The translations under genes and the position numbers were made by a program. DNA of 64,000 bases from Rebecca billardiae RCC1528 (Eukaryota; Protista; Haptophyta). A model generated the notes under the pieces. That model was not told the DNA's origin, made no database searches, and saw only the letters and a list, made by a program, of their open reading frames with translations. The stretch is taken from contig OZ251237.1 of assembly GCA_965240325.2 (NCBI GenBank), positions 1,612,001 through 1,676,000 of the forward strand. Direction: 5' to 3'. Of this stretch, positions 126 to 51,115 are shown one piece after another. Numbering within the stretch: the stretch's first letter is position 1; each line of letters begins with the position of its first letter.

Positions 126-1553
126 TCAGCGCGGCCCACATCGCAGGGGCGACAGCTGCACCACGCGCTGAAGCAACGGCTGCACTCCGACGCCATCGTT
201 GCCCACGCCCAGGCCGAGCGCGCCCGAGCGTCTGCCGTATGCGTGCACGCCGCCGTCCGCCGTCACGTAGAGGGCGTGAGATCGGCCGAGCGAGCAGTCG
301 ACCACGCGCGCATGCGCGAGGCCCTCCACCCGCTCGGGCAGCGTGCGATCCACTCGGTCCCCCAGCCCCAGCTGGCCACTGCTGTTGCTCCCAAACGTGT
401 GCACGCTGCCGTCCGCGCACACCACTGCGCTGCTGCGCGAGCCCGCGTTGGCGCGCACGGCACGCACGCCCATCAGTGCGTCGATGCGCGTGGGCACCAA
501 GCGATGCGCCACGTCACCGCAGCCGAGCGCGCCACCAAACGCGCCTCCGAAGGAGTGCACGCCGCCCGCTGCGTCCACCACCAGGCTGTGCTCGAAGCCC
601 GCGCTCACGTGCACGGCGCGCACGCCCGCGAGCGCCTCGATGCGCCGCGGCGTGCGCTGCTGCTGCTCGTCACCGTGGCCAAGGCAGCCGCCAGAGCCAT
701 ACCCGCACGAGTACACAGCGCCGCACGCCGAGAGCAGCAGCGTGTGCCCCCAGCCCGCGGCCATGCCGCCCACGCGCACGCCGTCCAGCGCCTCGATGCG
801 CGTCGGCTCCAGCCGGTCCTCCGTGTCGCCATGGCCGAGCTGGCCATAGCGGTTGTGGCCCCAGCTGTACGCCGCGCCCGCAGCTGTGAGCGCGAAGCTG
901 TGGTCGGCGCTAGCGCAAATCCCGACGACGAGCTCCGCACCCAATGCCGCCACCTGCACGAACGCCCGTCGCTCAGCCTTGTCGCCCACGCCCAGCTGGC
1001 CGTGGTCGTTGCTGCCGCACGCGTACACGGCACCCGCCTCGCTGAGCGCGAGCAGGTGCTTGTCGTCGGCAGCTACTGCACACACGCGCACCGCCTCGAG
1101 CGAGTTCACGCGCGTCGGCACGAGCACGCGAGACTCCCTGCTGAGCTCGGGATGGCCCAGCGGTGCGCCGCACGTGTGCACGCCGCCGTCCGCGTCAACA
1201 AAAGCGCTGAACGCGTCGGGATACATTCCACCGGAGGCTGCAATGCGCGTGTGCGCGTGCGCGAGCTCGAGCACACGCTCGCGCGCGAGCAGCTCCTCAG
1301 CCCACGTGGACACGCCAACGGGCAGGCTCGCCGGCAGCGCGGCCTTGTGCCCTCGCGTGCGTGCGCGCTCGCGCAGCGCGTGCTCGAGCGGCGCGCCGCG
1401 GAAGAGGCGCGCGGCGGCGTTGGCGGCAGCGAGGTCGCGCGTGCCACCGAGATGAGTGAGGATGCGCGCGACCAGCTCGGGCGGCACGTCGGTGAGCCGC
1501 ACGGCCGCCGCTGCCGACGCGCCCTCGGCGCGCGCGCGCGTGGTCGGTGCCAT
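126..1553 (-). CDS. F-box + RCC1-repeat (7-blade beta-propeller) protein, array copy 1
   Basis: N-terminal F-box-like motif LTDVPPELVARILTHL..RDL; repeated RCC1 motifs (VYACGSNxxGQLG, HTLLL, HSLVV, HSFG..LG.G). ATG at 1553 (MAPTTR) matches the paralogues. Confidence 0.9.
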   Translation of the reverse strand: MAPTTRARAEGASAAAAVRLTDVPPELVARILTHLGGTRDLAAANAAARLFRGAPLEHALRERARTRGHKAALPASLPVGVSTWAEELLARERVLELAHAHTRIAASGGMYPDAFSAFVDADGGVHTCGAPLGHPELSRESRVLVPTRVNSLEAVRVCAVAADDKHLLALSEAGAVYACGSNDHGQLGVGDKAERRAFVQVAALGAELVVGICASADHSFALTAAGAAYSWGHNRYGQLGHGDTEDRLEPTRIEALDGVRVGGMAAGWGHTLLLSACGAVYSCGYGSGGCLGHGDEQQQRTPRRIEALAGVRAVHVSAGFEHSLVVDAAGGVHSFGGAFGGALGCGDVAHRLVPTRIDALMGVRAVRANAGSRSSAVVCADGSVHTFGSNSSGQLGLGDRVDRTLPERVEGLAHARVVDCSLGRSHALYVTADGGVHAYGRRSGALGLGVGNDGVGVQPLLQRVVQLSPLRCGPR

Positions 1554-1716
1554 CAAGGGTGGTCGCGCCACTTGCTGTCGTCAACTCGCGCGCCGACGAC
1601 CACGGCGGTTCTGCACGTTAAATCATAGTAAACTGTAGCCGATTGGTTTTTGTAATTGCAGGATTTACAGCGCTAGTCGTGATGATTTTCGCGCTCGCTC
1701 CATTCTTCCGATGATG

Positions 1717-2629
1717 ATTGACCAAGGGCGCGAAAGGGGGTCGCTCGCTAAGCCCCACCCGCTCCGGCCAGCATGGCTGCCTGGCCGGCGGCGGCGTGCT
1801 TAAGCGAGCCGTAAGCCGGGAATCCACGCGCTGGCGGTGCGGTTTTGGCGGCGCAGGTGGCCTCGCAGGTCGCCTGCAGGTATGCTCAGAGCCTTAGGAC
1901 AGGTTGGTGGCCCGCAACCCCAGGCTCCTTGTCGCTGCTTGCCGACTGCAAGCGATCACGAGTCGACCGTGCAATCCCGCGTGCACGCGGCCCAACGTAG
2001 GGTGCTGCACATGCTAGCAGATGGTGAAGGGGGGTCGCCCGCCACGCAGACGTCCTCGGAGAGGACGTCGACCCCCGTGCGTCGTCTCGATCCCGACCTC
2101 TCCAGCCCAGGCTTGCGTGCTTCCTAATATGCAATGACATACGAACAACCATAGGCATTTCAAAATGTTATCTCGACTTTTGGGCTAGAACTTCACATTG
2201 TCCGTGGCTCTCTGGGCAGCAGGCCTTCAGCGACTCCTTGCGGGACAACGCCCAATCAAGGCGACGCACGGGGGTCGACGTCCTCTCCGAGGACGTCTGC
2301 GTGGCGGGCGACCCCCCTTCACCATCTGCTGGCATGTGCAGCACCCTACGTTGGGCCGCGTGCAACGCGGGACCGCACGGTCGACGCGTGATCGCTTGCA
2401 GTCGGCAAGCAGCGACAAGGAGCCGGGGTTGCGGGCCACCAACCTGTCCTAAGGCCCTGAGCATACCTGCAGGCGACCTGCGAGGCCACCTGCGCCGCCA
2501 AAACCGCACCGCCAGCGCGTGGATTCCCGGCTTACGGCTCGCTTAAGCACGCCGCCGCCGGCCAGGCAGCCATGCTGGCCGGAGCGGGTGGGGCTTAGCG
2601 AGCGACCCCCTTTCGCGCCCTTGGTCAAT
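1717..2629. mobile_element. Foldback/MITE-like non-autonomous element with ~370-bp inverted arms
   Basis: 1717-~2090 is the near-exact reverse complement of ~2255-2629, around a ~165-bp AT-richer spacer. Flanks tgatgattg / caatgattg resemble a degenerate 9-bp TSD (Mutator-like; inference). Confidence 0.75.
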
Positions 2630-2794: not shown

Positions 2795-4195
2795 TCAGCG
2801 CGGCTCACAGCGCAGGGGCGGCAGCTGCACCACGCGCTGCGGCGTCGGCTGCACTCCGCCATCGTGGCTCACGCCCAGGCCGAGCGTGCCTGGCAGGTAG
2901 CCGCATGCGTGCACGCTGCCGTCCGCTGTGACGTAGAGGGTGTGACATGTGCCGAATGCGCAGACCAGCACGCGCGCATGCGCGAGGCCCTCCACCCGCT
3001 CGGGCAGCGTGCGATCCATTCTGTCCCCCAGCCCCAGCAGGCCCAAGCGGTTGTACCCAAACGCGTGCACGCTGCCGTCCGCACACACCACTGCGCTGCT
3101 GCAACCGCCCGCGCTGGCGCGCACGGCACGCATGCCGCCCAGTGCTTCTATGCGCGTGGGCACCAAACGACGCGCCGTGTCACCGTGGCCGAGCGCGCCA
3201 TCGTCACCGTCTCCGAAGGAGTGCATGCCGCCCGCCGCGTCCACCACCAGGCTGTGCTGGGAGCCCGCGCTCACGTGCACGGCGCGCACGCCTGCAAGCG
3301 CAGCGATGCGCCGCGGCGTGCGCTGTGCCTGCTCGTCACCGTGGCCAAGGCAGCCGCCATAGCCATACCCGCACGAGTACACGGCGCCGCACGCCGAGAG
3401 CAGCAGCGTGTGCCACCTGCCCGCGGCCACGCCGCCCACTCGCACGCCGTCCAGCGCCTCGATGCGCGTCGGCTCCAGACGGTCCTCCGTGTCGCCGTGG
3501 CCGAGGTAACCGAAGAGGTTGCGGCCCCAGCTGCACGCCACGCCCGCTGTCGTGAGCGCGAGGCTGTGGTCGGCGCCAGCGCAAATCCCGACGACGAGCT
3601 CCGCACCCAGCGCCGCCACCTGCACGAACGCCCGTCGCTCAGCCTTGTCGCCCACGCCAAGCTGGCCGTACTCGTTGCTGCCGCACGCGTACACGGCGCC
3701 CGCCTCGCTCAGCGCGAGCAGGTGCTTGTAGCCGGCAGCCACTGCACGCACGCGCACCGCCTCGAGCGAGGCCACGCGCGTCGGCACGAGCACCCGCGCC
3801 TCCCCGCTGAGGTCGGGATGGCCCAGCGGTGCGCCGCACGTGTGCACGCCGCCGTCCGCGTCGACAAATGCGCTGAACGCGTTGTCATGATATCCGCCGA
3901 AGGCTGTACTGTGCGTGTGCGCGTGCGCGAGCTGGAGAATGCGCTCGCGCGCGAGCAGCTCCTCCGTCCACGTGGACACGCCAACGGGCAGGCTCGCCGG
4001 CAGGACGGCCTTGTGCCCTCGCGTGCGTGCGCGCTCGCGCAGCGCGTGATCGAGTGGCGCGCCGCGGAAGAGGCGCGCGGCTGCGTTGGCGGCGGTGAGG
4101 TCACGTGTGCCACCGAGATGAGTGAGAATGCGCGCGACCAGCTCGGGCGGCACGTCGGTGAGCCGCGCCTCGGCAGGCGCGCACGGCGGTGGCAT
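2795..4195 (-). CDS. F-box + RCC1-repeat protein, array copy 2
   Basis: Same F-box and RCC1 motifs. Likely start MPPPCAPAEARLTDVP at 4195; the ORF is open upstream to 4354. Confidence 0.88.
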   Translation of the reverse strand: MPPPCAPAEARLTDVPPELVARILTHLGGTRDLTAANAAARLFRGAPLDHALRERARTRGHKAVLPASLPVGVSTWTEELLARERILQLAHAHTHSTAFGGYHDNAFSAFVDADGGVHTCGAPLGHPDLSGEARVLVPTRVASLEAVRVRAVAAGYKHLLALSEAGAVYACGSNEYGQLGVGDKAERRAFVQVAALGAELVVGICAGADHSLALTTAGVACSWGRNLFGYLGHGDTEDRLEPTRIEALDGVRVGGVAAGRWHTLLLSACGAVYSCGYGYGGCLGHGDEQAQRTPRRIAALAGVRAVHVSAGSQHSLVVDAAGGMHSFGDGDDGALGHGDTARRLVPTRIEALGGMRAVRASAGGCSSAVVCADGSVHAFGYNRLGLLGLGDRMDRTLPERVEGLAHARVLVCAFGTCHTLYVTADGSVHACGYLPGTLGLGVSHDGGVQPTPQRVVQLPPLRCEPR

Positions 4196-5332: not shown

Positions 5333-6733
5333 TCATCGCCTCGGCGCGAGGCGGATGCCCTCGATCTCGGCCGCCTCGGCGCGCACGCCGATCTGGCCGA
5401 CGCCGAGCTCGCCGCTCGCGCCGAGGCCGCAGGCGAACGCGCGGCCGTCCGCGGTGGCGAAGAGCGAGTGGCCGTGCCCGCTCGCCGCGCCCACCACCAC
5501 CTCCGCGTCGAGCGGCCCGCGCAGCCGCTGCGGCAGCGAGACGGCGGGCAGCAGCCCCGCCTGGCCGAGCCCGAGGCAGCCGTCTGCGCCCGCGCCCCAC
5601 GCAAACGCGCCGCCGTCCGCGCCGACGGCGACGCAGAAGCTCGTGCCCGCCGCGGCGCAGCGGATGCGCACGCCCGCCGCGGCGAGCGCCTCGATGCGCT
5701 GCGGCAGCCAGCGGTCGAGCGAGTCGCCGTGCCCCAGCCGCCCCGCCGCGCCCCGGCCGAAGCTGAAGAGCTCGCCCGAGCGGCAGACGACCAGCGAGTG
5801 CGCTGAGCCCGCGGAGACGCAGGTGGCGCGCTGGCCGTCGAGCGCGGCGCGCACGCGCACGGGCGAGCGCGCGCGCGTCACGCCCGGCCCGAGGCCCAGC
5901 GCGCCGCTCGCGCCGTACCCGCACGCGTACACGGCGCCGTCCGCGCTCAGGAAGAGCGTGTGCGCCGCGCACGTCGAGGCGTCGATCAGCCGCGGCTCTG
6001 AGGCCCACGGCGGTGGGTGCGCGCGCGCGGAGCCGTGCGCGTGGTGGCCCGTGGAGTGGTGCACCGTGCTCGCGAGGCTCGCGGCCGAGTGCGCCGCCGA
6101 GAGCGCCGCGTGGTGGTGGTGCTGCTGCGGCGCCGCGCTGCTGACGGTCGTGTCGGACGAGGAGGAAGGCGAGACGGCTGGCAGCTGGAAGCGCACCTGC
6201 ACCGGGCTCGAGTAGGACTCCGTGTCACCCAGCCCGAGCGCGCCCGCGTCGCCGCAGCCCCAGGCCCACGCGCGGCCGCACTCGCCGATCGCGATCGAGG
6301 TGCCGTCGCCCGCCGCCACGCGCGCCACGCGCACGCCCGCGAGCTCGCCGCCCACGCGGCACGGCAGCGCGCACGTCGGCTCAGCGCCGGGCGGCGGCGA
6401 GGGCGAGGCCGAGCGCGCCGCCGAGCTCGCGCTCATCGCGCGCGGCGAGTGCGGCCGCGAGCCGTGGCCGAGGCCGAGCTGGCCGCGCGTGTTCCCGCCG
6501 AACGCGAAGAGCGCGCCCGTCTCGCGGCACACGGCGAGCACGTGGTCCGAGCCCACGGCGACCGCGGCGATCGACGTGGCGGCGAGCGCGGGCGGCACAG
6601 TCGGCAGCGTGAGCCGCACGGGCAGCGCGGGCGGGAGCGAGAGCGGGCCGTGGCCGAGCGCGGCGACGGCGGCGTCGCGCCGGGCGCCCATCGCGAGCAT
6701 CTGCCGCAGCTGCTCCGCCGCCGCGTCCACCGA

Positions 6734-6764
<31 letters not shown>

Positions 6765-7534
6765 GGGGCGGCGGGCAGGAGCCCGGCGGCGGCGGCGGCG
6801 GCTGCGGGGCCCATCGCCGCGGGGTCAGCCGCGGTCGCGGCGGCGGCGGCGGCGGCGTAGGCGGTCATCTCGTCGCCGCGCCAGCCGCCGCACAGCGCGA
6901 GCTGGCCGCTCGCCTGTATGAACACCGAGTGCGCGCGGCCCGCGGCGAACGGCGCCGGCGGCGGGAAGCGCGCGTGCACCTCGGCCCACAGCAGCTGCTG
7001 CGTCGCAGAGGGCGCGGCCGCGGGCGCGGCGCACGCGAGCGGGTGCGGCGCGGCGGCGTCGAGCTCCATCGGCGTGGGCGCCTCGGCGTCATGCGAGCCA
7101 CGCGCCAGCGGCGGCGCGCCCCGCCCCGCCGCGCTCGCGCGCAGCCGCAGCGCGAGCTCGACCGGCGAGGGCGCGCCGCCGCAGCCGACGTGGAACGCGC
7201 GGCAGACCGCGTCGAGGCGCGCGAGGTGCTCGGGCTCGGGGAGGTGCGCGAAGATGCGCGCGAGCACGTCGAGCGGGAGCATGTCGAGCCGAACCGCGGC
7301 GTGCGGCGCGCGCTGCCGCCGCAGCTCGGCGGGTGCGGACGCGGACGGCGGCACCAGCGGCGGCGGCGGCGGCGAGACGGCCGAGGCGCGCTGGTGGCAG
7401 TGGTGCGTGGGCGAGCAGCTGATGCGCGGTGGCGGCAGCCCGAGGAACACGTCCTCGTCCCGCGCGCGCTTCGGCATGATCGGGCCCTGGTCGGCGGCGT
7501 GCCGCCCGGGCGAGTGGTCGCGCAGCGGAGGCAT
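5333..7534 (-). CDS. Divergent F-box + RCC1-repeat protein with low-complexity insertions
   Basis: Strong F-box LDMLPLDVLARIFAHL..EHLARLDAVCRAF; RCC1 repeats (FGGNTRGQLGLG, WGCGDAGALGLG, FGRGAAGRLGHGD). Start uncertain (7534 or MPKRARD slightly downstream). Confidence 0.8.
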
Positions 7535-8400
7535 CCTCCCGCTGTGCGCGGTGCGTGGCGCCAGGTGTGTGTGCACTGAGTGCGAGGCTGGGGCTCTCAA
7601 CCGGGATGATGTGGAGCGCGGCTTCGCGCATTGGAGGGGGCCTGGATAGGAATGATCGAGAATCCGCTGATGAGCGACCCCTGACCAATCAGCGTGAACG
7701 CCAATACGCGGTTTGGTCGCGCACACACGCGAGAAAGCGCGCCGAAGGCCCACGTCACGCCTACGGGTCTTGCTTCTAAATATATTGCGACCGCCCTCGC
7801 CTGGGCCACTTTCGAGCACGTTCCCGCTGCCCGCCGCGTTTCGCGCGCGGTCGCGCGCGTGCGCGCTGCGAGTGCGCGGGGTCAACCGCCAAGGCGGGAG
7901 CCGTGCGCCGAGAACGGCGCGATTCCCCATCCAGATCGCGTGGCGAGATTATGGCGAATATTCTACTCACCGAGCGCTCGAAAAGCCCGAAAAGGCTAGA
8001 ACCACCACTTTTGGTGATGAGCAGGATCCCGATGACTCGCACCCGCCCTGTCCGCACCAATGGGCGCGAATGATTGCTAAAAAATGACGATAGGCGACTC
8101 GCGGCTTGATACGTGAAGCTAACCCGAAAATGAGTACAAGTAACAACCTTTTTTAAGGTTACGCAAGTAATCACTTGTGGATGATACTCGCGATGTGGAT
8201 AAGCGGAACCGCGAGGAGCAAAATTGCGACGCTCCGCGGATCATCTCGGCCACCAATCGGGGAGCCGTGATTGATGACATGCTTTTTCGGACGAAAGATC
8301 GACGACCCCTTTCAAATTCGAATTCACGCGCAGCTTTCAAGTTCCAAGCAAGTTCCAAGTCCGGGAGTCTCAAACCCACGCGGCCGGCAGTCGGCTCGGC

Positions 8401-9183: not shown

Positions 9184-9217
<34 letters not shown>

Positions 9218-18186: not shown

Positions 18187-18740
<554 letters not shown>

Positions 18741-19639: not shown

Positions 19640-19670
19640 CCCCCCCACAATCGGAAGCTTACCCTGTGAC

Positions 19671-27021: not shown

Positions 27022-27037
27022 CTTACCTACCCGTTAA

Positions 27038-30575: not shown

Positions 30576-31921
<1,346 letters not shown>

Positions 31922-36973: not shown

Positions 36974-36992
36974 TGCGGTCGTTATCGCATCA

Positions 36993-39738: not shown

Positions 39739-41241
39739 CTAGCAAGACCACCTCTGAGCATGCCACCATCCCAACACTGGCAGGAGAGCCCTCCGGCTCC
39801 GCCGTCGAGGCTTGCGTGCGCAGACTGGCAGTCGATTGCCGCCGCCAAGCTTGACGCGGTCCGTTCGGCGACTTCCAAGCCCGTACTCTGTGTCACCGGC
39901 ATCGTCGCCGTTCGTCGTACCCCGGCCCACGCGCGGCTGCCACCGGTTCACCGCTACTGCGACGGACTGCGCGCGCTTCGCCACGCGCTCGCCCCGAAGC
40001 TCCGCCGCTCTCCTCTCGCGCTTGAGCTCGGCGCCGTCGGCAGCCATGGCCGCCCGCTCGGCCGCAGCGCGATCTGTGCCACAGCACGCGCTGCGCTCGG
40101 CTTCGTCGGCGCGCAAGCTGGCGCGCGCAGCGTCGGCGACGGCGCGCGCGGTCGCCTTGCGCGACGAGTCCAGCTCCACCTGCTGCTCCGAGATGATCGC
40201 GTGCTCAGCAGGAGTCACGCGCTGCTCGTGCAGCGGCACCGGCACGCGGCCTGATGCGGAAATGCGCGGCGCGTCAGCGTCGGGGTGCGAGTCGAGGTCG
40301 CGGAAGGGGCAGCTGACGTGGGCGGCGCCCAGCAACTGGTCGTCGGTGTCCAGCTCCGCCAACCTCTCCGCCGCCGACGCGCCCAGCTTCCGGCTCAGGA
40401 TGCGCTCCACGTCCTGGCGCTTGCCCTTCGACCACCTGTGCACGGTCATCAGCCAGTTGCCGATCATCTCGAGCCGCGGCGAGTCGTGGCGTGCCGAGAT
40501 GCCGTGCACGTCCGCGCAGGCGTGCGCGACCTTCTTGGGCTTCCTCATCCCACCGTCGCCCGCGGTCTGGGCGTACGCCGCGGTGAACACTCTGACCAAC
40601 TGCTTGCGCTTTCTCAAGTTCTTCTCGAGCATGAGGTCCACGAGCGTGCGGAGGAGGTCGAGGAGCACGAAGTTGAGCACCGATGCGTACCGCGGGTGCG
40701 TGCCGGCCACGAAGCGGCAGCCAAAAGTGTGCATCACGTGAATGGCGCGCGCCGCCGCCGCCGTCTCCTCGACCTGCTCCACGCGGACGTTGATGTCTGG
40801 CGGCAGCTCGAGCCTTGACTGCTGCACGCCATCGTGGCCGTCCGCGGAGGAGGTGAGCCCCTCTGCGGTGCTGGCGGGGACCTCGGGCGGGTCGCACATG
40901 TCCATGGACACGCGCACATCATCATCCGCCACGCCCTGGACCTCGTCATGCCCGGCACGGCGGTCAGCAAGTTGATCGACGTCGAGCGGCCCTTGCGGCA
41001 GAGGCCCGCGGGGAGCGTCAGAGCGCGAGAGCGCGGCGTCGGGTGGGCAAGGAGGCTGCGTCGAGTCGTTGTCGATGTCCACCCCACCGCGTAGGTCATG
41101 TTCGTCTCCGCGTAGGTCGCCAGCACGTGCTGCTAGGACTCGCTCCTTGGTCGCGAGCAGCACACGTTGAGCACGCAGATGCAAATTATGAAGCACGAGC
41201 TTCGGTTGGACCACGACTCCCAGCGAGAGCCCGGTCCGCAC
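39739..41241 (-). CDS. Unknown protein encoded by TIR element copy 2
   Basis: 500-codon ORF homologous to 28970-30292; start uncertain. Confidence 0.55.
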   Translation of the reverse strand: MRTGLSLGVVVQPKLVLHNLHLRAQRVLLATKERVLAARAGDLRGDEHDLRGGVDIDNDSTQPPCPPDAALSRSDAPRGPLPQGPLDVDQLADRRAGHDEVQGVADDDVRVSMDMCDPPEVPASTAEGLTSSADGHDGVQQSRLELPPDINVRVEQVEETAAAARAIHVMHTFGCRFVAGTHPRYASVLNFVLLDLLRTLVDLMLEKNLRKRKQLVRVFTAAYAQTAGDGGMRKPKKVAHACADVHGISARHDSPRLEMIGNWLMTVHRWSKGKRQDVERILSRKLGASAAERLAELDTDDQLLGAAHVSCPFRDLDSHPDADAPRISASGRVPVPLHEQRVTPAEHAIISEQQVELDSSRKATARAVADAARASLRADEAERSACCGTDRAAAERAAMAADGAELKRERRAAELRGERVAKRAQSVAVAVNRWQPRVGRGTTNGDDAGDTEYGLGSRRTDRVKLGGGNRLPVCARKPRRRSRRALLPVLGWWHAQRWSC

Positions 41242-41823
41242 GAGCCATGGCTACCCGTCCGCAGCCGCCCAGCCGCTTGACGAGGCGCCTGCACCGAGGT
41301 GGGTGCGCCCAATGGCGAGCGGACGGCCGTCGATGAGGGCCATCAGCCTCGCCGACCCCGTTCAGAGCTCCGCTCCCGCGCCGGGGCCAGCCGAGCGCGG
41401 ATATAACTGGGACCAGGCCCGCCTCGGCGGACTCGCCGGCCGCGGTTCGGCGGCATGGCAGCCGGGGCGGCGGCCGCGGGTGACAGTAGCGGCGGAGCGC
41501 CCGACTGTTATTCCTCCTTCCGCGCGACGCTCCGGCTGCGCGGCTAAGGTAGCGATGGGCCCGCCGACCCCCCTTTCTGCCAGTCGCCCCGACTCTGCCC
41601 GCAACCCGCGCTATCTAACGAGGGTCGCAGTTGATCAGAGAGGGGACTGGCTGAGGGGCGGCGGCTCCCGGCCACCGTCGCGTAGGGGGGTGCCACACCT
41701 CGGAGAGGTGGAGGCCCGGTGGCCCGGGGGCCGGCGGCTCGAGGCCGTCCGGGCCGCCGCCGCAGAGGGAAGGGGGGAAGAGACGCGAGAGTCGAGTGCC
41801 AGCAGCGCCACAGGCGGTCGGCG

Positions 41824-42777
41824 TCAGCCAGGATCCGCAAAGACGGCGGCCAGCCGAAGGCGCAGCTCCCGGCGCTCCGCCGCGCGGGGGAAATACGTCG
41901 CAGGGGCGGCGTTCCAGCGACCGGCCAGCGCGCGTTCCTGCCCAGTGAAGCCGAGGTGGTCAGCCACGGCAGCGGCACACCGGCGCACCGAGTTGGTAGA
42001 CACGTCAGCGGGCCGCAGCCCAACTTCCGCGCCCACCCTGCGAAGCCAAGCCAAATAAGCCGAGTAGGGGACCGGTGCCCCCGAAGGGAGCACGAACAGG
42101 GGGTCGTCGGCCGAGGACTCCCGGGGGCGGCGAAGGAGGTACCTGCCCAATGCCGCCACTGGGCACAGCGTCGCACCCGCCGGTAGGCGGGGCAGGAGCT
42201 CAACTGCCAAGCGGCCCGCGTGGTGTTTCTCGCTGCGAAGGGTCACCAGGAAGCCGAGGGCGGTGGGTGCGAGGTCCCTGAGCCGAATGAACTTGGAGGA
42301 CCCGTACCTTGCGACTCCGGCCACGCACTCGGCCCGACACATCGTAAAAAGCTGCACAAGCAGCATGGCCCAGAAAGCAGCGTCACCATCGCGCACGCGT
42401 GCGCCGATTGCGCGGACCGAATCCAGCGAAAGCGCCGGGGCAGGGGCAGGTTGGCGGGCGGGGAGCCGCCGAAAAGCGGCGACGATGTGCTGACGTCCGA
42501 GGTCCATGATGGGCCCCTCCTGCACACCCAGGACTTGAGCCGCCACCTGCACCGCCGACACGTATTGCGAGATGGTCGTGGGAGCTTTCCCCTGCAGCCC
42601 CAAGTGCGCTGCAAACAGCCGCAGGGCCAGGGCCGACGGGGGCCACACGGGCGCCACGCCACCCGAGCGGAAGAAGGCGACGTACGCTCGGACCCCCGCC
42701 GCGTTCGGGCCCGAGCCCACCGCCGCCGCCGCGAGCGCCACACACCCCGCGGCTGCGGCCACGATGGGGTTGTCCAT
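41824..42777 (-). CDS. Tyrosine recombinase
   Basis: N-terminal SAM-like region (LGLQGKAPTTISQYVSAV); catalytic R (MCRAE), K (RSEK), LCPV.AL..YL, PLF, NSVRR, GRW, ATY. Confidence 0.9.
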   Translation of the reverse strand: MDNPIVAAAAGCVALAAAAVGSGPNAAGVRAYVAFFRSGGVAPVWPPSALALRLFAAHLGLQGKAPTTISQYVSAVQVAAQVLGVQEGPIMDLGRQHIVAAFRRLPARQPAPAPALSLDSVRAIGARVRDGDAAFWAMLLVQLFTMCRAECVAGVARYGSSKFIRLRDLAPTALGFLVTLRSEKHHAGRLAVELLPRLPAGATLCPVAALGRYLLRRPRESSADDPLFVLPSGAPVPYSAYLAWLRRVGAEVGLRPADVSTNSVRRCAAAVADHLGFTGQERALAGRWNAAPATYFPRAAERRELRLRLAAVFADPG

Positions 42778-43049
42778 TACCGCCGGGTATTCCCAGCTTG
42801 TTTGCCCAGCAATGAAGGGCCATGGCCGCCTGGCGCTTGGAGGGTAGCGGCCGCCCGAAGCCCACGCTGAGACCGACCGGATCGCACCCGGCGGAGCGCT
42901 CAGGACGGAGTCCCGCCCGCTGGCAGGGGCTCCGATAGGAACGGGCGCCGGGGCAAGGTCTGCCCGGTCGGCCGGGCCGCTGGTGAAGGCAGCGACGAAA
43001 GACGCCTGCCGCTGAGCGACGAGATCGCAAGAAGCGACGACAGCACGCG

Positions 43050-43350
43050 GTGTGCATATCGACCGCTGGGATGGCCAGCAAGCGAAGTGCACATCGCAGA
43101 TTATTGAAGATAGCGAAGATGAGACTGATGCAAGCAAGCGATGTGCACATCGCTGAAGGGTGAGACTGCAAGCAAGCGATGTGCATATCGCTGAAAGATG
43201 AGACTGCAAGCAAGCGATGTGCATATCGCTGAAAGATGAGATTGCAAGCAAGCGATGTGCATATCGCTGAAAGATGATGAGATTGCAAGCAAGCGATGTG
43301 CATATCGCTGATGAAAGATGAGATTGCAGGAAAGCGATGCGCGGATCGCC
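43050..43350. repeat. 38-bp palindromic minisatellite between RT/RH and YR
   Basis: Unit TGCAAGCAAGCGATGTGCATATCGCTGAAAGATGAGAY at 43129, 43167, 43205, 43243 and 43284, plus degenerate copies on both sides. Confidence 0.93.
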
Positions 43351-43412
43351 GAACGGCGGAGAGAGGATGGCCGGAGGCGAGCCCGCGCGCCGTGCGGCGA
43401 GAACGCCCCGCG

Positions 43413-45170
43413 TCAAAGGGCCAGCGCCGCTTCGCCCGCCAACCGAGGCTCGGCCGCGAGCGAGCAGAGGTCGAGCCACATGTCAGCCGACGTCTCCCGG
43501 CGCCGGCTGAGGGCGTCGGCGAGGCGGTTGCGCGCACCGGGTAGATGGCAGCACCAGAGCGTGATCGCGTGCTCCGCCACCAGCAGCGCGAGGCGCTGCA
43601 GGAGGCCATTGAGCAGCGCAGAGCCCGGCACACGCCACCGGCGCAGCCACCCGAGGGCCACCGTGCTGTCCGTGAAAAGGCGAACGTGGCAGCCCGCCAA
43701 GTACGGCGCCCACTCGATGGCAGCATGGAGGAGCATGTACAGCTCCATGTCTGCGATGTGCCTCAGCTCGCCCGACGCGCGCAGCGACGCCAAGTCCCTG
43801 CGCAGCGCCCAGCCGTTGGAGCAGGCGGCGCCGCCGCCCGCCGCCTCCCAGGCGGCGTCGGTAGCGATCACCGGCGCGCCCACCGCCAGGCCCACCGGGC
43901 GGAACAGCCGCCGCCAGCCGGCACCCCGCTCGAGGAGCGCGGCGAAGAATGCGCACTCGCTGGGCAGCGCGGCGCCGAGCTGGGTCGAGAGACGGCCCTG
44001 CGCAAACGCCGATGGCGTGTGTGCGAGGTCGACGAAGGGGCGAAGGAAGGCCCGGCACGACGGCTGGATCGTAGCCGCCCAGCCGAGGCAGCCAATGAGC
44101 TTCTGCAGCTCACGCTCGGAGGGCCGCGATACCCGCAGCTCGGAGAGGAGCGCGGCGTACCGGGCGCGCTTCTCTGCCGGCAGCGAGACGGCATCGTTGG
44201 CGACGTCGACGTCAAAGCCCAGGACCACGGCACGCTTGGCGGGCGCCACGAGCTTGCCCGGCTTGTCGGCCGGGTCGAGGCCCATGGCGGTCAGCGTGGC
44301 GCACAGCCGCTCGAACGCCGCCTCGAGATCGGCCTTGCGATCGCCCCACCCGAAGAAATCGTCGATGTACGAACCGAGGCTGAACGAGAGGAGGCCGGAC
44401 CAACGCGCGACGAAGGCGTCGCGAACGGCGTCGGACAGGCGCACAAACCAGTAAGGAGAGGATGCGAGACCGAAGGGAAGAGATGTGAAGAAGTAGTAGA
44501 ACCCGCGCCAGAACACGCAGAGCAGGCTGTAGTCCTCCGGACGTACGGCCATCCGCGTGTACGCGCGCGCGATGTCCACCTTGAACACGTAAGAGTCAGG
44601 CGTGAGGGAAGACAGCATGCGGTCGATGCGCTCGAAGGAGAAGGAAGGGGCGTGCACCCGCGGGTTCACGCCCGATGCGGTCATGTCGACGATGAGGCGC
44701 CGATCGGCGCCCCCATCTTTGGGCACCGAGCCCAGCGGGGACACGACCATGTGCGCGCGCGGGAAGGGGCGGTGCTGGAACGGGCCAGCCAAAACGCCGA
44801 GAGAGACGTACTCCGCGATGCGCGCGTCGACAAACTCGGGGAAAGCGCGCGCTGAAGGATGATTGGGACGGAATGCGGCAGAAGGCTGGCCGGCGAAGAG
44901 CACGTCGACGCCGTCGCGCAGCTCGCGCGACAGGTCGACGCCCGCGCCGCCCAGCAGGAACGCAGAAACTTGCTGGAAACGAAGTTGGAGCGCAGTCGGC
45001 GCGACTGGCAGGCTGGCGGCGAGGCCAGCCAGCATGCGCGAGCGCTGGCACATCTCGGCGGCTGTGATCGGCGGGCAGGTCACTGTAGGGGCAGCACCGG
45101 CAGCCCACGACACCGGCAGGTCGAGCGCATCGACGCCGGCGTTCTCGCCACCCGCCGCCGCCGCCGCCTC
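43413..45170 (-). CDS. DIRS-type reverse transcriptase + RNase H
   Basis: SPLGSVPK..RRLIVD, KVDIARAY, LPFGLASSP, YIDDF, LGF; RNase H ATDA, ELY, TDS, HLPGARNRLADALSR. The frame is open up to the gag TAG; first ATG at 45053. Confidence 0.93.
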   Translation of the reverse strand, partial: EAAAAAGGENAGVDALDLPVSWAAGAAPTVTCPPITAAEMCQRSRMLAGLAASLPVAPTALQLRFQQVSAFLLGGAGVDLSRELRDGVDVLFAGQPSAAFRPNHPSARAFPEFVDARIAEYVSLGVLAGPFQHRPFPRAHMVVSPLGSVPKDGGADRRLIVDMTASGVNPRVHAPSFSFERIDRMLSSLTPDSYVFKVDIARAYTRMAVRPEDYSLLCVFWRGFYYFFTSLPFGLASSPYWFVRLSDAVRDAFVARWSGLLSFSLGSYIDDFFGWGDRKADLEAAFERLCATLTAMGLDPADKPGKLVAPAKRAVVLGFDVDVANDAVSLPAEKRARYAALLSELRVSRPSERELQKLIGCLGWAATIQPSCRAFLRPFVDLAHTPSAFAQGRLSTQLGAALPSECAFFAALLERGAGWRRLFRPVGLAVGAPVIATDAAWEAAGGGAACSNGWALRRDLASLRASGELRHIADMELYMLLHAAIEWAPYLAGCHVRLFTDSTVALGWLRRWRVPGSALLNGLLQRLALLVAEHAITLWCCHLPGARNRLADALSRRRETSADMWLDLCSLAAEPRLAGEAALAL

Positions 45171-46979
45171 CTAGATGCGGCCCACCGCCGCCGGCCAGCC
45201 GTCGCCGGACAGCCCCACAGCGTGGGCCCCGGCGAGGTGATCGGGCGACGCGCAAATGGCACACCGCCGCGCGTGGAACTCGTCGAATTCGCCGGGGCCA
45301 AACGGCGCGCCGGGGCGGCGGCCGATCGGGCACGTCGCGACGGTGCAGCGCACGCCAGTGAGCTGGAAGCGCTGGCAGGCGCGCGCCGCGTTCGCCTGCG
45401 CCTTGGTGAGCAGCGGTGCGCCCCCCGCGCCCACAAACTTCTGCAGCGACGGCGGGACGTAGTTGTCAGGCCGCGCGGTGCGCGGCTCGAAGCCCCCACC
45501 GCCGCCGGGTGGGAGCGCCCCGCCCCCGCCCCCCGCCGCTTCGAGCGCCGCGCCGCCGGCCCCACCCAGCTCGGCGGGTGCGAGGCGAGGCCGTTGCGAC
45601 GCCGCCCCCGCGTCGTGATCGCCCACCGGCGCCGACCGCTTCAGCATAGGAGCGGCAGCGACCGCGGCGTTGGCCGCGCGCAGCGATGCCGACACCGCTT
45701 GCGCCGCCGTCAGCTCGGCGTTGAGCGCGCGCGCCTCGGCCGACTCGCTGTCGCGCAGGAAGAGGATCGATGACGCGCGGCCCGAGCGCCGCTCCTCCGC
45801 CGCGGCGGCAACGAACGATTTGTTCACCACCGAGAGGAGGGACTCGGCGGGCATCAGGCCGCGCAGCTGCTCGAGCCACGACGAGAACTCGAGCGCCTCG
45901 GCCCGCATGGCCGGCGACCAATGAGAGGCTGGGGAGGGGTCATCTGGCGAGGCGGCCGGGATAAACGTCGTTGTGAGGCAGCCCAGCAGCGCCTCGAGGG
46001 ACTGGAAGGGCTGGTCCTTCGGCTGCACCCCGCCGAGGAGACGCCCCCCGCGAGAGAACTCGCGAGCGAAGCGCTCCCCCAGGCTTGGAAACGCCTGGAC
46101 CATGTCGCGCAGGTTGTAGCTCGTGCAGAGCTGGCCAGACGAGTCGCGCACCACGAGCGCGCGGGGCGCGTCACGCGCCGGGTCCGCCACCACCCGGCGC
46201 GCCGGGCCGGCCCCCGACGACGCCCCGGCCTGCTCCGTCATCGCCTGCATGAGCGCCGCCACCGACTGGGCCGAGAACCCGAGCCCCGCGGCATGAGCGG
46301 GCAGCGCGGCGGCAGCGGCAGGGCCAGCAGCGCCCCCCGGCGCGCGGTCGGCCGCCGCCGCCGCCGTCCCCGCCGGCAGCGCGGTAAGGCCGGGGGCGAG
46401 CGCGTGCGCCGCGAGGCCTGCAAGCAGCGACGAAGGCGCGGCCGCCGCCGCCGCGCCCGCCGCGTCCAGCGCGACCGAAACCCCGGGAGCAGCAGAAGCA
46501 GCCGCGCCGAGCGTGGGTGCGAGGCTGGGGAGCAGCTGGTCCGAGGAGGGAGGCGGAGGCATCGCCGCCGCGGCCGCCGCTGGGACCGAGGTGGGCGGGC
46601 GGGGCAGCGCGGCCGGGACGGCAGGCGTCGGGGCGAGCAGGGCCGGCGCCGCCGGGGCGAGCCCCGCCGCCCCCGCTGGGACCAACGCGGCGAGCTGGGC
46701 CAGCAACGGCGACAGCTGCGCCAGCTGCGCGGTGAGCTGCGCCGCGACGCCGGCGCTGAGCGGGACCCCCTCCACCGGGGCCGCCGGCGGGACCAGAGCG
46801 GCACTCGCCGCTAGCGGGGCACTCACCGACGGGGCCGCCGGCGCCGCCGACGCGGGCACTGGACCTTGAGCGTCTTGAGCACCGCCGCGCCCCGCGGCCG
46901 GGCCCTGTCGCTCGCGAGAGCGGCCGCCGCGGAGGGCCATCAGGCGCCCCAGCGAGAGCGCAGCCGAAATGCAGATCAT
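45171..46979 (-). CDS. gag-like ORF1 of YR retrotransposon
   Basis: Ala/Pro-rich N-terminus, helical core, C-terminal Cys/His cluster (CQRF..C..C..H..CAIC..H); position upstream of RT. Confidence 0.7.
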   Translation of the reverse strand: MICISAALSLGRLMALRGGRSRERQGPAAGRGGAQDAQGPVPASAAPAAPSVSAPLAASAALVPPAAPVEGVPLSAGVAAQLTAQLAQLSPLLAQLAALVPAGAAGLAPAAPALLAPTPAVPAALPRPPTSVPAAAAAAMPPPPSSDQLLPSLAPTLGAAASAAPGVSVALDAAGAAAAAAPSSLLAGLAAHALAPGLTALPAGTAAAAADRAPGGAAGPAAAAALPAHAAGLGFSAQSVAALMQAMTEQAGASSGAGPARRVVADPARDAPRALVVRDSSGQLCTSYNLRDMVQAFPSLGERFAREFSRGGRLLGGVQPKDQPFQSLEALLGCLTTTFIPAASPDDPSPASHWSPAMRAEALEFSSWLEQLRGLMPAESLLSVVNKSFVAAAAEERRSGRASSILFLRDSESAEARALNAELTAAQAVSASLRAANAAVAAAPMLKRSAPVGDHDAGAASQRPRLAPAELGGAGGAALEAAGGGGGALPPGGGGGFEPRTARPDNYVPPSLQKFVGAGGAPLLTKAQANAARACQRFQLTGVRCTVATCPIGRRPGAPFGPGEFDEFHARRCAICASPDHLAGAHAVGLSGDGWPAAVGRI

Positions 46980-47625
46980 GATGCGAAATCAGTAGCGACG
47001 CCACCGCCCGCACCCGAGGAGGAATAAGCCGACGGCCCGCACGCAGCCGACGAGGGTTGCGCCCGCCCTTCAGCCGAGGTCGCCACCGAGCGGGATACGG
47101 TCGGTCGACCGAAGTGCTGCTGACTGAGCAGCTGGGGCTTTCGGCCCAGGCCCAGCCCCGCCTCGGCTGCCGACAGACGGGCCGGCCGCGGCACCGCATC
47201 GGCGGCGCTCAGAGGTAGAATCTACCGGTTCGGTAGGCGGGTCCGGCTGCTCGTATATAGACCGCCCAGGAATCATACCGCTTCGCTGGGCGCGCACCCG
47301 GCGCCCGGAGCTTGCTGCCCGCCCAGCACGGTCCGATCACTTTGCGGAAGCCCGCGGCTCTGCGCAGCTCGGGGGAGAGTGGTGAGTGGGACCGAGAGTG
47401 ATAAGTGAGGTCAGGTTACTGCCGCCCTGAGCAGGTCAGTCGACAGCGGTTAGCAGCGTTGAGGAGCAGCCGATCATGGCGGCGGGCTGGCCCAGTTATA
47501 CCCCTATAACCGAACGGTTATAGAACATTGGAATCTGCCGATCGCGAAAACCCGCCGAACAAGTTCTGAATGGAAAAGAAAAGAAAATCAAAACTCAATT
47601 TAATCTGATGGACCCCCTACAGACT

Positions 47626-47727
47626 GGTGTGGGCGACGACGGCGGAGCGCGGCTGACGCCGCAGCGCGTGGTGCAGCTGCCGCCCCTGCGCTCTGGGCCG
47701 CGCTGGGCATCATTCGGGCAGATTTGA
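47626..47727 (+). pseudogene. Detached 3' tail of array copy 7
   Basis: GVGDDGGARLTPQRVVQLPPLRSGPRWASFGQI*. Confidence 0.85.
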
Positions 47728-47951: not shown

Positions 47952-49376
47952 ATGGCACCCGCGACACGCGCGCGCGCCAAGGCGCGCTCCGCAGCGGCGG
48001 CCGTGCGGCTCATCGGCCTGCCGCCCGAGCTGGTCGCGCGCGTCCTCGCCCACCTCGGTGGCACACGTGACCTCGCCGCCGCCAACGCCGCCGCGCGCCT
48101 CTTCCGCGGCGCGCCGCTCGAGCACGCGCTGCGCGAGCGCGCGCGCTCGCGCGGGCACGAGGCCGCGCTGCCGACGACCCTGCCCGTTGGCGTGTCCACG
48201 TGGGTGGAGGAGCTGCTCGCGCGCGAGCGCATTCTCGAGCTCGCGCACGCGCACACGCACAGTACAGCCTTCGGCGGATATCATGACAACGCGTTCAGCG
48301 CGTTTGTCGACGCGGACGGCGGCGTGCACACGTGCGGCGCACCGCTGGGCCATCCCGAGCTCAGCAGGGAGGCGCGGGTGCTCGTGCCGACGCGCGTGCG
48401 CTCGCTCGAGGCGGTGCGCGTGCGCGCAATGGCTGCCGGCTACAAGCACCTGCTCGCGCTGAGCGAGGCGGGCGCCGTGTACGCGTGCGGCAGCAACGGC
48501 TTCGGCCAGCTGGGCGTGGGCGACAAGGCTGAGCGACGGGCGTTCGTGCAGGTGGCGGCGCTGGGTGCGGAGCTCATCGTCGGCATCGGCGCTGGCGAGC
48601 ATAACAGCTTTGCGCTGGCGACAGCTGGCGTGGCGTACAGCTGGGGCCGCAACGCCTGGGGCCAGCTCGGCCACGGCGACAGGCAACGACGGCTGGAGCC
48701 GACGCGCATCGAGGCGCTGGACGGCATGCGCGTGGGCGGCGTGGCCACGGGCGCGGGGCACACGCTGCTGCTCTCGGCGTGCGGCGGCGTGTACTCGTGC
48801 GGGGATGGCTATGCCGGCCGCCTCGGCCACGGTGACGAGCAGCAGCAGTGCACACCACGGCGCATCGAAGTGCTCGCGGGCGTGCGCGCCGTGCACGTGA
48901 GCGCGGGCGTGACGCACAGCCTGGTGGTGGACGCAGCGGGCGGCGTGCACTCCTTCGGAGGCGGTTTAGGTGGCGCGCTCGGCCACGGTGACGAGGCGCG
49001 TCGTTTGGTGCCCACGCTCATCGAAGCACTGATGGGCGTGCGGGTCGTGCGCGCCAGCGCGGGCCTGCACAGCAGCGCGGTGGTGTGCACGGACGGCAGC
49101 GTGCACGCGTTTGGGAACAACCACTGTGGCCAGCTGGGGCTGGGGGACCGAATGGCTCGCACGCTGCCCACGCGGGTGGAGGGCCTCGCGCATGCGCGCG
49201 TGCTCGACTGCTCGCTCAGCGACTGCCACGCCCTCTACGTCACGGCGGACGGCGGCGTGCACGCATGTGGCAGACATGCGGGCGCGCTTGGCCTCGGCGC
49301 GGGCAACGATGGCGGAGTGCAGCGGGCGCTGCAGCGCGTGGCGCAGCTGCCGCCCCTGCGCTGTGGGGTGCGCTGA
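47952..49376 (+). CDS. F-box + RCC1-repeat protein, array copy 8
   Basis: Intact ORF from ATG 47952. Confidence 0.9.
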   Translation: MAPATRARAKARSAAAAVRLIGLPPELVARVLAHLGGTRDLAAANAAARLFRGAPLEHALRERARSRGHEAALPTTLPVGVSTWVEELLARERILELAHAHTHSTAFGGYHDNAFSAFVDADGGVHTCGAPLGHPELSREARVLVPTRVRSLEAVRVRAMAAGYKHLLALSEAGAVYACGSNGFGQLGVGDKAERRAFVQVAALGAELIVGIGAGEHNSFALATAGVAYSWGRNAWGQLGHGDRQRRLEPTRIEALDGMRVGGVATGAGHTLLLSACGGVYSCGDGYAGRLGHGDEQQQCTPRRIEVLAGVRAVHVSAGVTHSLVVDAAGGVHSFGGGLGGALGHGDEARRLVPTLIEALMGVRVVRASAGLHSSAVVCTDGSVHAFGNNHCGQLGLGDRMARTLPTRVEGLAHARVLDCSLSDCHALYVTADGGVHACGRHAGALGLGAGNDGGVQRALQRVAQLPPLRCGVR

Positions 49377-49690
49377 GCATCATTCTGGCAGATCGATCTG
49401 AAACGGTACGCGTATTGAGCTGCGCGCGTGGGTTTCGCACGCCGCTGTCGGCTCGAGCCAGCGTTGCGTTTCAAGCACGCACATGACACGACACAACGTC
49501 ATCGCAGAGTGGCCACGCCCACTGTCGATGAGAGACGAGCCCATCAATCATCGTCGTCATCATCCAAGGCTGAAAAAGAATTGATGACAGCGTGCGAAAA
49601 TCGTCGTCATCATCACGTGCTCACGAAAAAACCTGGGGCCAACCGCCTCGGTTCCGAGCGCGAGCGACAGCGGCTGCGCGACCACCCTTG

Positions 49691-51115
49691 ATGGCACCGA
49701 CGACGCGCGCGCGCGCCAAGGCGCGCTCGGCAGCGGCGGCCGTGCGGCTCACCGACCTGCCGCCCGAGCTGGTCGCGCGCGTCCTCGTCCACCTCGGTGG
49801 CACGCGCGACCTCGCCGCCGCCAACGCCGCCGCGCGCCTCTTCCGCGGCGCGCCGCTCGAGCACGCGCTGCGCGAGCGCGCGCGCGCGCGCGGGCACGAG
49901 GCCGCGCTGCCGGCGACCCTGCCCGTTGGTGTGTCCACGTGGGCGGAGGAGCTGCTCATGCGCGAGCGCATTCTCGAGCTCGCACACGAGCACACGCGCA
50001 TTGCAGCCTCCGGTGGATCGTATGACAACGCGTTCAGCGCGTTTGTCGATGCGGCCGGCGGCGTGCACACGTGCGCCGCACCGCTGGGCCATCCCGAGCT
50101 CAGCAGGCAGGCGCGGGTGCTCGTGCCGACGCGCGTGTGCTCGCTCGAGGCGGTGCGCGTGCGTGCAGTGGCTGCCGGCTACAATCACCTGCTCGCGCTG
50201 AGTGAGGCGGGCGCCGTGTACGCGTGCGGCTGCAACGAGTACGGCCAGCTGGGCGTGGGCGACAAGGCTGAGCGACAGGCGTTCGTGCAGGTGGCGGCGC
50301 TGGGTGCGGAGCTCATCGTCGGCATCGGCGCTGGCGAGCATTACAGCTTTGCGCTGGCGACAGCTGGCGTGGCGTACAGCTGGGGCCGCAACGCCTGGGG
50401 CCAGCTCGGCCACGGCGACAGGCAACGACGGCTGGAGCCGACGCGCATCGAGGCGCTGGACGGCGTGCGCGTGGGCGGCGTGGCCACGGGCGCGGGGCAC
50501 ACGCTGCTGCTCTCGGCGTGCGGCGGCGTGTACTCGTGCGGGGATGGCTATGCTGGCCGCATTGGGCACGGTGACGAGCAGCAGCAGTGCACACCACGGC
50601 GCATCGAAGTGCTCGCGGGCGTGCGCGCCGTGCACGTGAGCGCGGGCGTGACGCACAGCCTGGTGGTGGACGCAGCGGGCGGCGTGCACTCCTTCGGAGG
50701 CGGTTTAGGTGGCGCGCTCGGCCACGGTGACCAGGCGCGTCGCTTCGTGCCCACGCGCATCGAAGCACTGATGGGCGTGCGGGTCGTGCGCGCCAGCGCG
50801 GGCCTGCACAGCAGCGCGGTGGTGTGCACGGACGGCAGCGTGCACACGTTTGGGAACAACCGCTTGGGCCAGCTTGGGCTGGGGGACCGAATGGATCGCA
50901 CGCTGCCCGAGCGGGTGGAGGGCCTCGCGCATGCGCGCGTGCTCGACTGCTCGCTCGGTGACGCCCACGCCCTGTACGTGACTGCTGATGTCGGCGTGCA
51001 CGCATGTGGCATGCATTCGGGCGCGCTCGGCCTGGGCGTGGGCAGCGATGGCAGAGTGCAGCCGATGCTTCAGCGCGTGGTGCAGCTGCCCCCCTTGCGC
51101 TGTGGGCTGCGCTGA
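49691..51115 (+). CDS. F-box + RCC1-repeat protein, array copy 9
   Basis: Intact ORF from ATG 49691; upstream gcgcgaccacccttgATG is shared with copy 1. Confidence 0.9.
   Translation: MAPTTRARAKARSAAAAVRLTDLPPELVARVLVHLGGTRDLAAANAAARLFRGAPLEHALRERARARGHEAALPATLPVGVSTWAEELLMRERILELAHEHTRIAASGGSYDNAFSAFVDAAGGVHTCAAPLGHPELSRQARVLVPTRVCSLEAVRVRAVAAGYNHLLALSEAGAVYACGCNEYGQLGVGDKAERQAFVQVAALGAELIVGIGAGEHYSFALATAGVAYSWGRNAWGQLGHGDRQRRLEPTRIEALDGVRVGGVATGAGHTLLLSACGGVYSCGDGYAGRIGHGDEQQQCTPRRIEVLAGVRAVHVSAGVTHSLVVDAAGGVHSFGGGLGGALGHGDQARRFVPTRIEALMGVRVVRASAGLHSSAVVCTDGSVHTFGNNRLGQLGLGDRMDRTLPERVEGLAHARVLDCSLGDAHALYVTADVGVHACGMHSGALGLGVGSDGRVQPMLQRVVQLPPLRCGLR

Follow-up and report, generated by a model that had tools for sequence, protein, structure and literature searches.

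Nine intronless paralogous genes, numbered c1 to c9, lie within a 64,000-nucleotide stretch of the haptophyte Rebecca billardiae RCC1528 (contig OZ251237.1, positions 1,612,001 to 1,676,000; hereafter the window), and they encode proteins in which an F-box-like N-terminus precedes a propeller of RCC1 type. Diversifying selection on fixed loop positions of this propeller is strongly supported. With a probability of about 0.62, the genes represent a multigene family of substrate receptors, i.e. adaptors of Skp1–cullin–F-box (SCF) ubiquitin ligases with a diversifying propeller face, the SCF-adaptor mechanism itself being probable as judged from homology.

The copies comprise ~470–480 codons each (about 475 amino acids) and form single unbroken open reading frames (ORFs), with the exception of c7, which is split by a transposon; eight of the nine are intact. 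Three head-to-tail sets are present: the minus strand carries c2-c1, the plus strand c3-c4-c5 and c7-c8-c9. Copy c6, also on the plus strand, is solitary. Copy c1 (126..1553) has its ATG at 1553, its listed ORF beginning with GTG at 1571. In c2 (2795..4195) the homology to the family starts near the ATG at 4195, although the ORF is open to 4354, and the 5' end is unlike that of most copies. The first plus-strand trio is led by c3 (10833..12236), followed by c4 (13387..14814), the copy chosen for structural modelling, and c5 (15347..16771; ORF open from 15272). The C-terminal tail of c6 (33468..34913) is slightly longer and ends with WASFGQI. The body of c7 (37748..39096) covers codons 1 to ~450 and is continued by 10 codons of the inserted element to a stop at 39127, while its tail (47626..47727), holding the last ~33 codons and the stop, is in frame with the family C-terminus, resembles c6 and likewise ends with WASFGQI. 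Both c8 (47952..49376) and c9 (49691..51115; ORF open from 49592) are intact. The initial annotation had proposed exactly this number of intronless copies, eight of them intact, and all were located. It had also described their scaffold as almost identical; conserved it is, but near-identity is an overstatement, since the silent divergence between copies is about 0.15–0.19. The alignment of c1–c9 is gapless over ~450 codons spanning the propeller, with c2–c9 sharing 79–84% amino-acid identity with c1. Pairwise values among the copies were 0.05–0.16 for dN, 0.08–0.20 for dS and 0.6–1.0 for the whole-gene dN/dS ratio (omega), with a G+C content at third codon positions (GC3) of ~0.85.

Propeller fold and selection on its loops

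The propeller was recognized in every copy tested by the profiles RCC1 (PF00415; E = 1e-62 to 1e-65) and RLD, the RCC1-like domain (PF25390; 231–247 bits at a cut-off of 150), the E-values for RCC1/RLD ranging overall from 1e-62 to 1e-73. The AlphaFold2 model of c4 (predicted local distance difference test, pLDDT, 92.4; predicted template modelling score, pTM, 0.90) consists of seven four-stranded blades behind four N-terminal helices, and the number of blades is seven in all copies. Comparison of this model with solved structures by Foldseek gave UVR8 as the best match (template modelling score, TM, 0.92; 30% identity), followed by the RLDs of HERC2 (TM 0.85–0.87) and HERC1, and by RPGR, RCC2 and RCC1; RCC1 itself was a weaker structural match (TM 0.70–0.76) than UVR8 or HERC. 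By curated profile and by fold alike, the copies belong to the RLD superfamily, and their C-terminal part is, as in F-box proteins, a protein-interaction domain. A role as UV-B receptors of the UVR8 type was considered and rejected because the tryptophan triad of the GWRHT motifs (W233, W285 and W337) is not conserved. The equivalent AGxxH sites are the most variable ones in the protein (WG, RW, SL, EA, RY, LS and others).

Stacking of the 52-residue blades demonstrated that variability peaks at positions 7–8, 24, 26–27 and 35–37, being low in blades 1–2 and high in blades 3–7. Every one of the loop strings quoted in the initial annotation (the sets WG-xxxx, AGxxH, SAGxxH, SFGxxxx and FGxNxx) was found in the copies; for instance, WG is followed by HNRY, RNLF, HNGY, CDSY, INDM, RNGV, HNGV or RNAW, AG by WG, RW, SL, EA, WE, GR or AG, and SAG by FE, SQ, RF, RY, LS or VT. 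Codon site models (GY94/F3x4, own implementation) were applied to the nine copies. While the one-ratio model M0 yielded an omega of 0.48, the log-likelihood rose from -5626.9 under M1a to -5502.0 under M2a (twice the difference, 2ΔlnL, = 250), and M2a placed 66% of sites in a class with omega 0.09, 25% in a class with omega 1 and 8.7% in a class with omega 9.4. The diversifying selection that had been suggested from the loop strings is strongly supported also by the M7/M8 comparison (2ΔlnL = 275), as well as by M8a/M8 (244). A star tree gave a 2ΔlnL of 314; with a separate tree for each segment, the N-terminus gave 8.6 and the three segments of the propeller 38.6, 69.5 and 94.0. The omega of the selected class was 8.6–11.5 on the full alignment with every tree, and 5.7–8.9 in the propeller segments. 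In null simulations the likelihood ratio test (LRT) statistic stayed at ~0 without recombination and at 0–4.6 with nine segments placed on shuffled trees, whereas the real data reached 246 under the identical procedure.

A posterior probability above 0.95 for omega > 1 was obtained for 26 sites, and 22 of these fall into the three loop windows, which together make up 70 of 450 codons (hypergeometric p = 7e-16). Tyrosine (6-fold), tryptophan (4.8-fold) and aspartate (2.2-fold), as well as arginine and serine, are enriched at the selected sites, a composition typical of binding hot spots. Purifying selection, in turn, acts on the scaffold: omega is ~0.09 in about two thirds of the codons. Nucleotide diversity at codon positions 1, 2 and 3 was 0.53, 0.55 and 0.29 in the hypervariable codons and 0.08, 0.065 and 0.12 elsewhere, and several hypervariable codons combine an invariant third base with three or four alternative bases at the first two positions. 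Silent diversity of invariant codons was 0.06 where they adjoin hypervariable codons, compared with 0.08–0.11 further off. The pattern of diversity by codon position, together with the unraised silent sites in the neighbourhood, therefore excludes that the loops are a hot zone of mutation, that they preserve old divergence as an island, or that they are simply relaxed. A mutational hot spot, or hypermutation like that of diversity-generating retroelements (DGRs), was likewise rejected: neither the third positions nor the adjoining silent sites are hypervariable, all four bases change, and the variants are fixed germline paralogues. No DGR-like template repeat was obvious in the window, though no search was aimed at one.

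According to the DSSP assignment of the c4 model, positions 7–8 make up the a-b loop, and the long loop that connects strands c and d has positions 24–27 and 35–37 at its two ends. The a-b and c-d loops exit a four-stranded antiparallel blade on the same side, so that the selected loops share one side of the propeller. In the alignment with UVR8, position 24 corresponds to W94, position 26 to D96 and position 37 to D107, while positions 7 and 8 correspond to the tryptophan and arginine of the GWRHT motifs (W233/R234 and W285/R286). These very residues of UVR8 (W285/R286, W233/R234, W94, D96 and D107) hold the dimer together at the interaction surface (PMC5091643). From the model and the alignment, we infer that the selected residues probably form a continuous surface on a single side of the propeller, the side on which ligands usually bind.

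The copies differ not only by substitution. A permutation test like that of the pairwise homoplasy index was significant (p < 0.001), four-gamete incompatibility affected 46% of the informative site pairs, and the closest relative of a given copy shifts from blade to blade, so that the copies are mosaics. In the DNA of c8, for example, blades 3–6 are 95–99% identical to c9, and blades 1–2 are closest to c2 (96–97%). The mosaic structure points to gene conversion. DNA homology among most copies extends from 20–50 nt before the ATG to at or near the stop codon, longer flanks being common to subgroups only, namely the 3' flank of c3/c4/c5 (~480 nt at ~90% identity for c3-c4) and ~100–130 nt of 3' flank in c2/c6/c8. 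Since homology stops near the ends of the coding sequence despite a silent divergence of only ~0.15, this suggests either that gene conversion is restricted to the genes themselves or that the silent sites are constrained, in line with the GC3 of ~0.85. The restricted homology would also fit an origin by retrocopying, which for the local tandems is not supported, as their 3' flanks are shared.

Furthermore, the hypervariable loops recur outside the window. The best match to the copies in protein collections (52% identity) came from a Logan assembly, and the nearest named relatives are haptophytes (Emiliania huxleyi and Prymnesium). Sixteen database proteins with a near-identical F-box-like N-terminus, 64–77% identical to one another and including an 'E3 ubiquitin ligase' of E. 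huxleyi CCMP1516, exhibited entropy peaks at positions 7, 8, 24, 26, 27, 35 and 37 (2.5–2.9 bits vs ~0.5 bits elsewhere). The DNA of eight genes of this E. huxleyi type was analysed; one stems from the E. huxleyi reference genome, the other seven from marine metagenome assemblies, a single one of which supplied five. For these the site models yielded a 2ΔlnL of 172, omega being 12 in 6% of sites, and the same loop windows contained 14 of the 15 selected sites (p = 2e-12). These genes share only ~38–40% identity with the copies in the window, so that the hypervariable face characterizes the family more broadly. In the E. huxleyi reference the copy occurs singly and not in an array, next to SPRY-domain and GST genes; on KB864830.1 of strain CCMP1516 (locus L001, 9010–9831), the SPRY-domain gene is divergent from the F-box/RCC1 relative and 170 nt away from it. 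The SPRY domain is often used by ubiquitin-ligase receptors in immunity. A viral origin or mimicry was considered as well: viral contigs scanned with N-terminal patterns contained no relative, and metagenome contigs only one 28%-identical locus, both scans relying on narrow patterns that distant homologues, viral ones included, could escape.

The F-box-like N-terminus and the proposed SCF role

The N-terminus of the copies carries the motif L-x-D-[VL]-P-P-E-L-V-A-R-[IV]-L, followed by D-L and R-L-F elements, and the Pfam family F-box-like is the top match of this N-terminus (E = 0.003–0.055). A family alignment of 41 members, including 33 database relatives of the same architecture, was used to extend the comparison: 23 of the 41 match F-box-like at E <= 0.01 (best 4e-9), these matches being judged by E-value and not by the curated cut-off. 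When the profile of the 87 N-terminal columns was compared with the PDB, the first thirteen matches were solved F-box proteins, headed by FBXO22 (E = 5e-4) and FBXO31 (5e-3), with FBH1, FBXW7, GID2, cyclin F and FBXO4 next. When modelled on its own (pLDDT 86), the N-terminus forms helices at residues 12–20, 25–34 and 41–53. Among the copies the segment is conserved (M0 omega 0.40), selection being barely significant there (2ΔlnL = 8.6). The window also contains a distant F-box-like/RCC1 relative of 865 amino acids (5333..7930, minus strand), located between c2 and c3 and standing outside the hypervariable subfamily; it shares 31–39% identity with c4 over local matches, its RCC1 propeller is broken up by long low-complexity inserts rich in alanine, proline and serine, and its F-box-like score of 26.4 bits is above the Pfam cut-off. 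Taken together, the N-terminus is probably an F-box by homology.

The protein would accordingly be composed of a putative three-helix F-box-like module, a helical linker of ~60 residues and a seven-bladed RCC1-like propeller of UVR8/HERC type. About 26 codons (omega ~9), placed in the a-b loop and at both ends of the c-d loop mainly in blades 3–7, are under strong diversifying selection, and gene conversion appears to swap segments among the copies, thus reshuffling the sets of loops. Since the F-box-like module would dock on Skp1/cullin, as its homology suggests, each paralogue would bring a different target to the SCF ubiquitin ligase. To judge from the selection regime, the targets may be fast-evolving; proteins of viruses or of selfish elements would be the likeliest candidates, with self/non-self determinants as the alternative. 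The lineage of E. huxleyi is engaged in an ecologically important arms race with giant viruses. It is conceivable, although rather doubtful, that haptophytes, this bloom-forming lineage included, possess a germline, antibody-like repertoire of SCF receptors whose RCC1 propeller face is diversified by point substitution and by gene conversion among paralogues, and which recognise and ubiquitinate proteins of giant viruses or selfish elements. If true, protists would have a branch of innate immunity that has so far gone unnoticed.

Genomic setting and rival explanations

The G+C content across the window is 57–79%, and eukaryotic transposons are present. The one splitting c7 (39097..47625, ~8.5 kb) has 13-bp terminal inverted repeats GTAGGGGGTCCAT and is flanked by a 5-bp duplication of GGTGT, and a retroelement with reverse transcriptase is nested in it (~41402–47528). 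A sister copy (~18739–30548) has the same 13-bp terminal repeats and harbours a nested Copia-like element (~19160–28593). The repeat occurs four times in the window compared with 0.04 expected. Both transposon copies share a 425-bp left end (91% identity), a ~1.9-kb part (85%) and a 94-bp right end (96%), and in each the ~1.9-kb part encodes an ORF on the minus strand (28970–30292, 440 amino acids, and 39739–41241, 500 amino acids); this ORF has no Pfam match and may encode an undescribed transposase or accessory protein. The homology of c7 to the family ends at codon ~450, soon followed by a stop. The inverted repeats, the duplication and the in-frame tail downstream indicate that c7 was broken by insertion and not by decay. 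Its tail lies ~225 nt upstream of c8, from which it follows that c7, c8 and c9 formerly were a tandem trio. Decay of the whole array into pseudogenes was rejected as well: eight ORFs are intact, two thirds of the codons have an omega of ~0.09 and the sole broken copy is the one split by the transposon. Ordinary neighbours are an ankyrin-repeat protein with long glutamine and alanine runs (8401–10434, plus strand), a weakly matching GT47 exostosin-like glycosyltransferase (31628–33565, minus strand), a NIPA-type magnesium transporter (53190–55043, minus strand) and a leucine-rich-repeat (LRR_6) protein (57147–59243, minus strand). In the only public sequencing run with this region, the c3-c4 spacer at 12615–13010 had a word depth of 52–128, compared with 0–14 in all other bins, and it probably contains a high-copy repeat.

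Several points weigh against the reading as SCF adaptors with a diversifying face. The F-box-like profile scored 13.7–17.7 bits in the nine copies, below the curated Pfam cut-off of 24.3, and the N-terminal model superposes best on Skp1-bound F-boxes (Fbw7, Fbs1, FBXO3, FBXO31 and D3), but with TM <= 0.54 and E > 1 throughout. The step from F-box to SCF adaptor taken in the initial annotation thus has weaker support than the selection: the top N-terminal match and the profile search favour it, whereas the scores are sub-threshold and the fold match lacks significance. The single face is based on blade topology and equivalence to UVR8, not on measured distances. As to selection, the site models are an own implementation, neither PAML nor HyPhy, applied to nine sequences with heavy recombination; the strong codon bias (GC3 ~0.85) may lower dS somewhat, and a few selected sites outside the loops that show only two states (alignment columns 100, 164 and 367) are probably artefacts of recombination. 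A search of public runs with c4 listed no RNA run, and the only matching DNA run (share 0.11) gave contigs of 100–330 nt with many differences, uninformative on alleles and expression. Finally, the label 'immune-like' is unproven, as none of the results points to particular targets or to a function in defence.

It is in part from these points that the rival explanations draw. The copies could be diversifying binding modules other than SCF adaptors, their N-terminal helices being a degenerate or repurposed F-box without Skp1 binding, and could act as scaffolds, as GTPase or chromatin regulators, or as mating-type or allorecognition determinants like the fungal het genes. The sub-threshold F-box-like scores and non-significant Foldseek matches just mentioned would fit this, as would the many settings outside ubiquitination in which RCC1-like propellers serve (the top structural matches include UVR8, RPGR and RCC1). 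Such a role is nevertheless unlikely, since F-box-like is the best and only consistent match of the N-terminus, which keeps the core P-x-E-L-(V/L)-x-x-(I/V)-L and the D-L ... R-L-F stretch and is conserved (M0 omega 0.40; 2ΔlnL = 8.6), and since relatives of the same architecture match at E-values down to 4e-9. The arrays could also be part of a selfish or mobile system, carried or co-amplified by transposons or acting as a toxin-antidote-like drive, with their diversity reflecting intragenomic conflict. They do lie among several transposons, dispersed copies are homologous in the coding sequence and short flanks only, and Caenorhabditis F-box families have been tied to genomic conflict and hybrid incompatibility. 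No copy, however, lies inside a recognisable element, the sole contact with a transposon being the insertion that breaks c7; the local duplicates are plain head-to-tail tandems with common 3' flanks (c3/c4/c5), and in E. huxleyi the relative stands alone in an ordinary gene neighbourhood, all of which makes a selfish system quite improbable.

That there is no positive selection whatsoever is highly improbable. The loops would then be unconstrained or older, the scaffold homogenised by gene conversion, and the statistical signal a false positive induced by recombination. Recombination is indeed pervasive, homology ending ~20–50 nt from the coding sequence despite ~0.15 silent divergence hints at gene-confined conversion, and the proportion of silent differences by the NG86 method (pS) is raised in loop codons (0.27 vs 0.135). 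Yet unconstrained sites cap at omega = 1, far below the estimates of 8.6–11.5 for the full alignment and 5.7–8.9 for the propeller segments, and null data with extreme mosaicism did not exceed an LRT of 4.6. The third positions of the hypervariable codons are much less diverse than the first and second, invariant codons one or two positions off have no excess of silent divergence, and conversion tracts would not passively bypass patches of only 2–4 codons. In addition, the same sites are selected in the separate E. huxleyi-type gene set. The selection signal is unusually clean, and it recurs in that set. If the copies are SCF receptors, the family would be a tractable system for studying how protists recognise viruses or selfish elements, and a fixed scaffold with defined variable positions is a possible natural library of binders. 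Even without Skp1 binding or expression, the family would still be a striking case of diversifying selection of unexplained purpose.

Comparison with known systems

Nematodes and plants are already known to have fast-evolving F-box adaptors, and hypervariable propellers have been described in the NOD-like receptors of fungi, whereas a version of the former with an RCC1 propeller in marine algae appears to be undescribed. A literature search that left most subscription journals outside its scope found no description of F-box/RCC1 expansions or of hypervariable RCC1 propellers.

The cluster of many F-box(-like) paralogues resembles the S-locus F-box (SLF) arrays of Solanaceae and Rosaceae, in which the members collaborate in recognition, each of them covering part of a set of variable targets. 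SLF proteins function in self-incompatibility and have domains of FBA type; the copies in the window, unlike them, have an RCC1-like propeller and no known link to mating. The pairing of an F-box-like module with RCC1 repeats is shared with FBXO24, a single-copy mammalian gene that joins an F-box to RCC1 repeats, and for which, to our knowledge, neither a hypervariable face nor a paralogue array has been reported. FBXO24 is described as an orphan F-box protein, is linked with RCC1 in the literature and has been tied to sperm formation (PMC10932545).

The F-box and MATH-BTB adaptor families of nematodes and plants combine tandem expansion with a constrained F-box and a positively selected substrate domain (Thomas 2006, via PMC8120010), and the immune role proposed for them is largely unproven (PMC8120010). 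The same combination was found in the window: selection in the substrate domain, a constrained F-box-like end and the tandem sets c2-c1, c3-c4-c5 and c7-c8-c9. Unlike those adaptors, the copies have an RCC1-like propeller instead of FTH/FBA, kelch or leucine-rich-repeat domains, their selected sites are strictly blade-periodic and the host is a GC-rich alga.

In the fungal NOD-like receptors of the HNWD/het-d/het-e type, WD40 propellers have a few positions in each repeat under diversifying selection, which map to the interaction surface; their repeats are ~85% identical within a gene and variable in number, and sequence is exchanged among members (PMC4986451). A fixed propeller scaffold, a few diversifying positions per repeat and exchange between paralogues are common to both systems. 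Membership of the copies in these receptors of high internal conservation was nonetheless rejected, since the DNA of their blades is only 64–68% identical from blade to blade and the blade number is fixed at seven in all copies; moreover, the repeats are RCC1 and not WD40, and the effector end is F-box-like instead of NACHT or HET.

The closest structural counterparts are the RLDs of UVR8 and the HERC proteins (PDB 4DNW, 3KCI and 7Q40), the variable positions of the copies being those of the UVR8 interface, although the tryptophan triad sets UVR8 apart. As in the HERCs, the RLD would be coupled to a ubiquitin-ligase module, here an F-box-like one, to judge from homology, instead of a HECT domain. 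In HERC5/6, where an RLD is joined to a ubiquitin ligase, a few positively selected sites have been linked to antiviral activity, and ligase-joined RCC1-like domains can therefore be targets of pathogen-driven selection, though at only a few sites (PMC7775381). Compared with the ~2 selected sites of HERC5, the family in the window has ~26, distributed over a large repertoire of paralogues.

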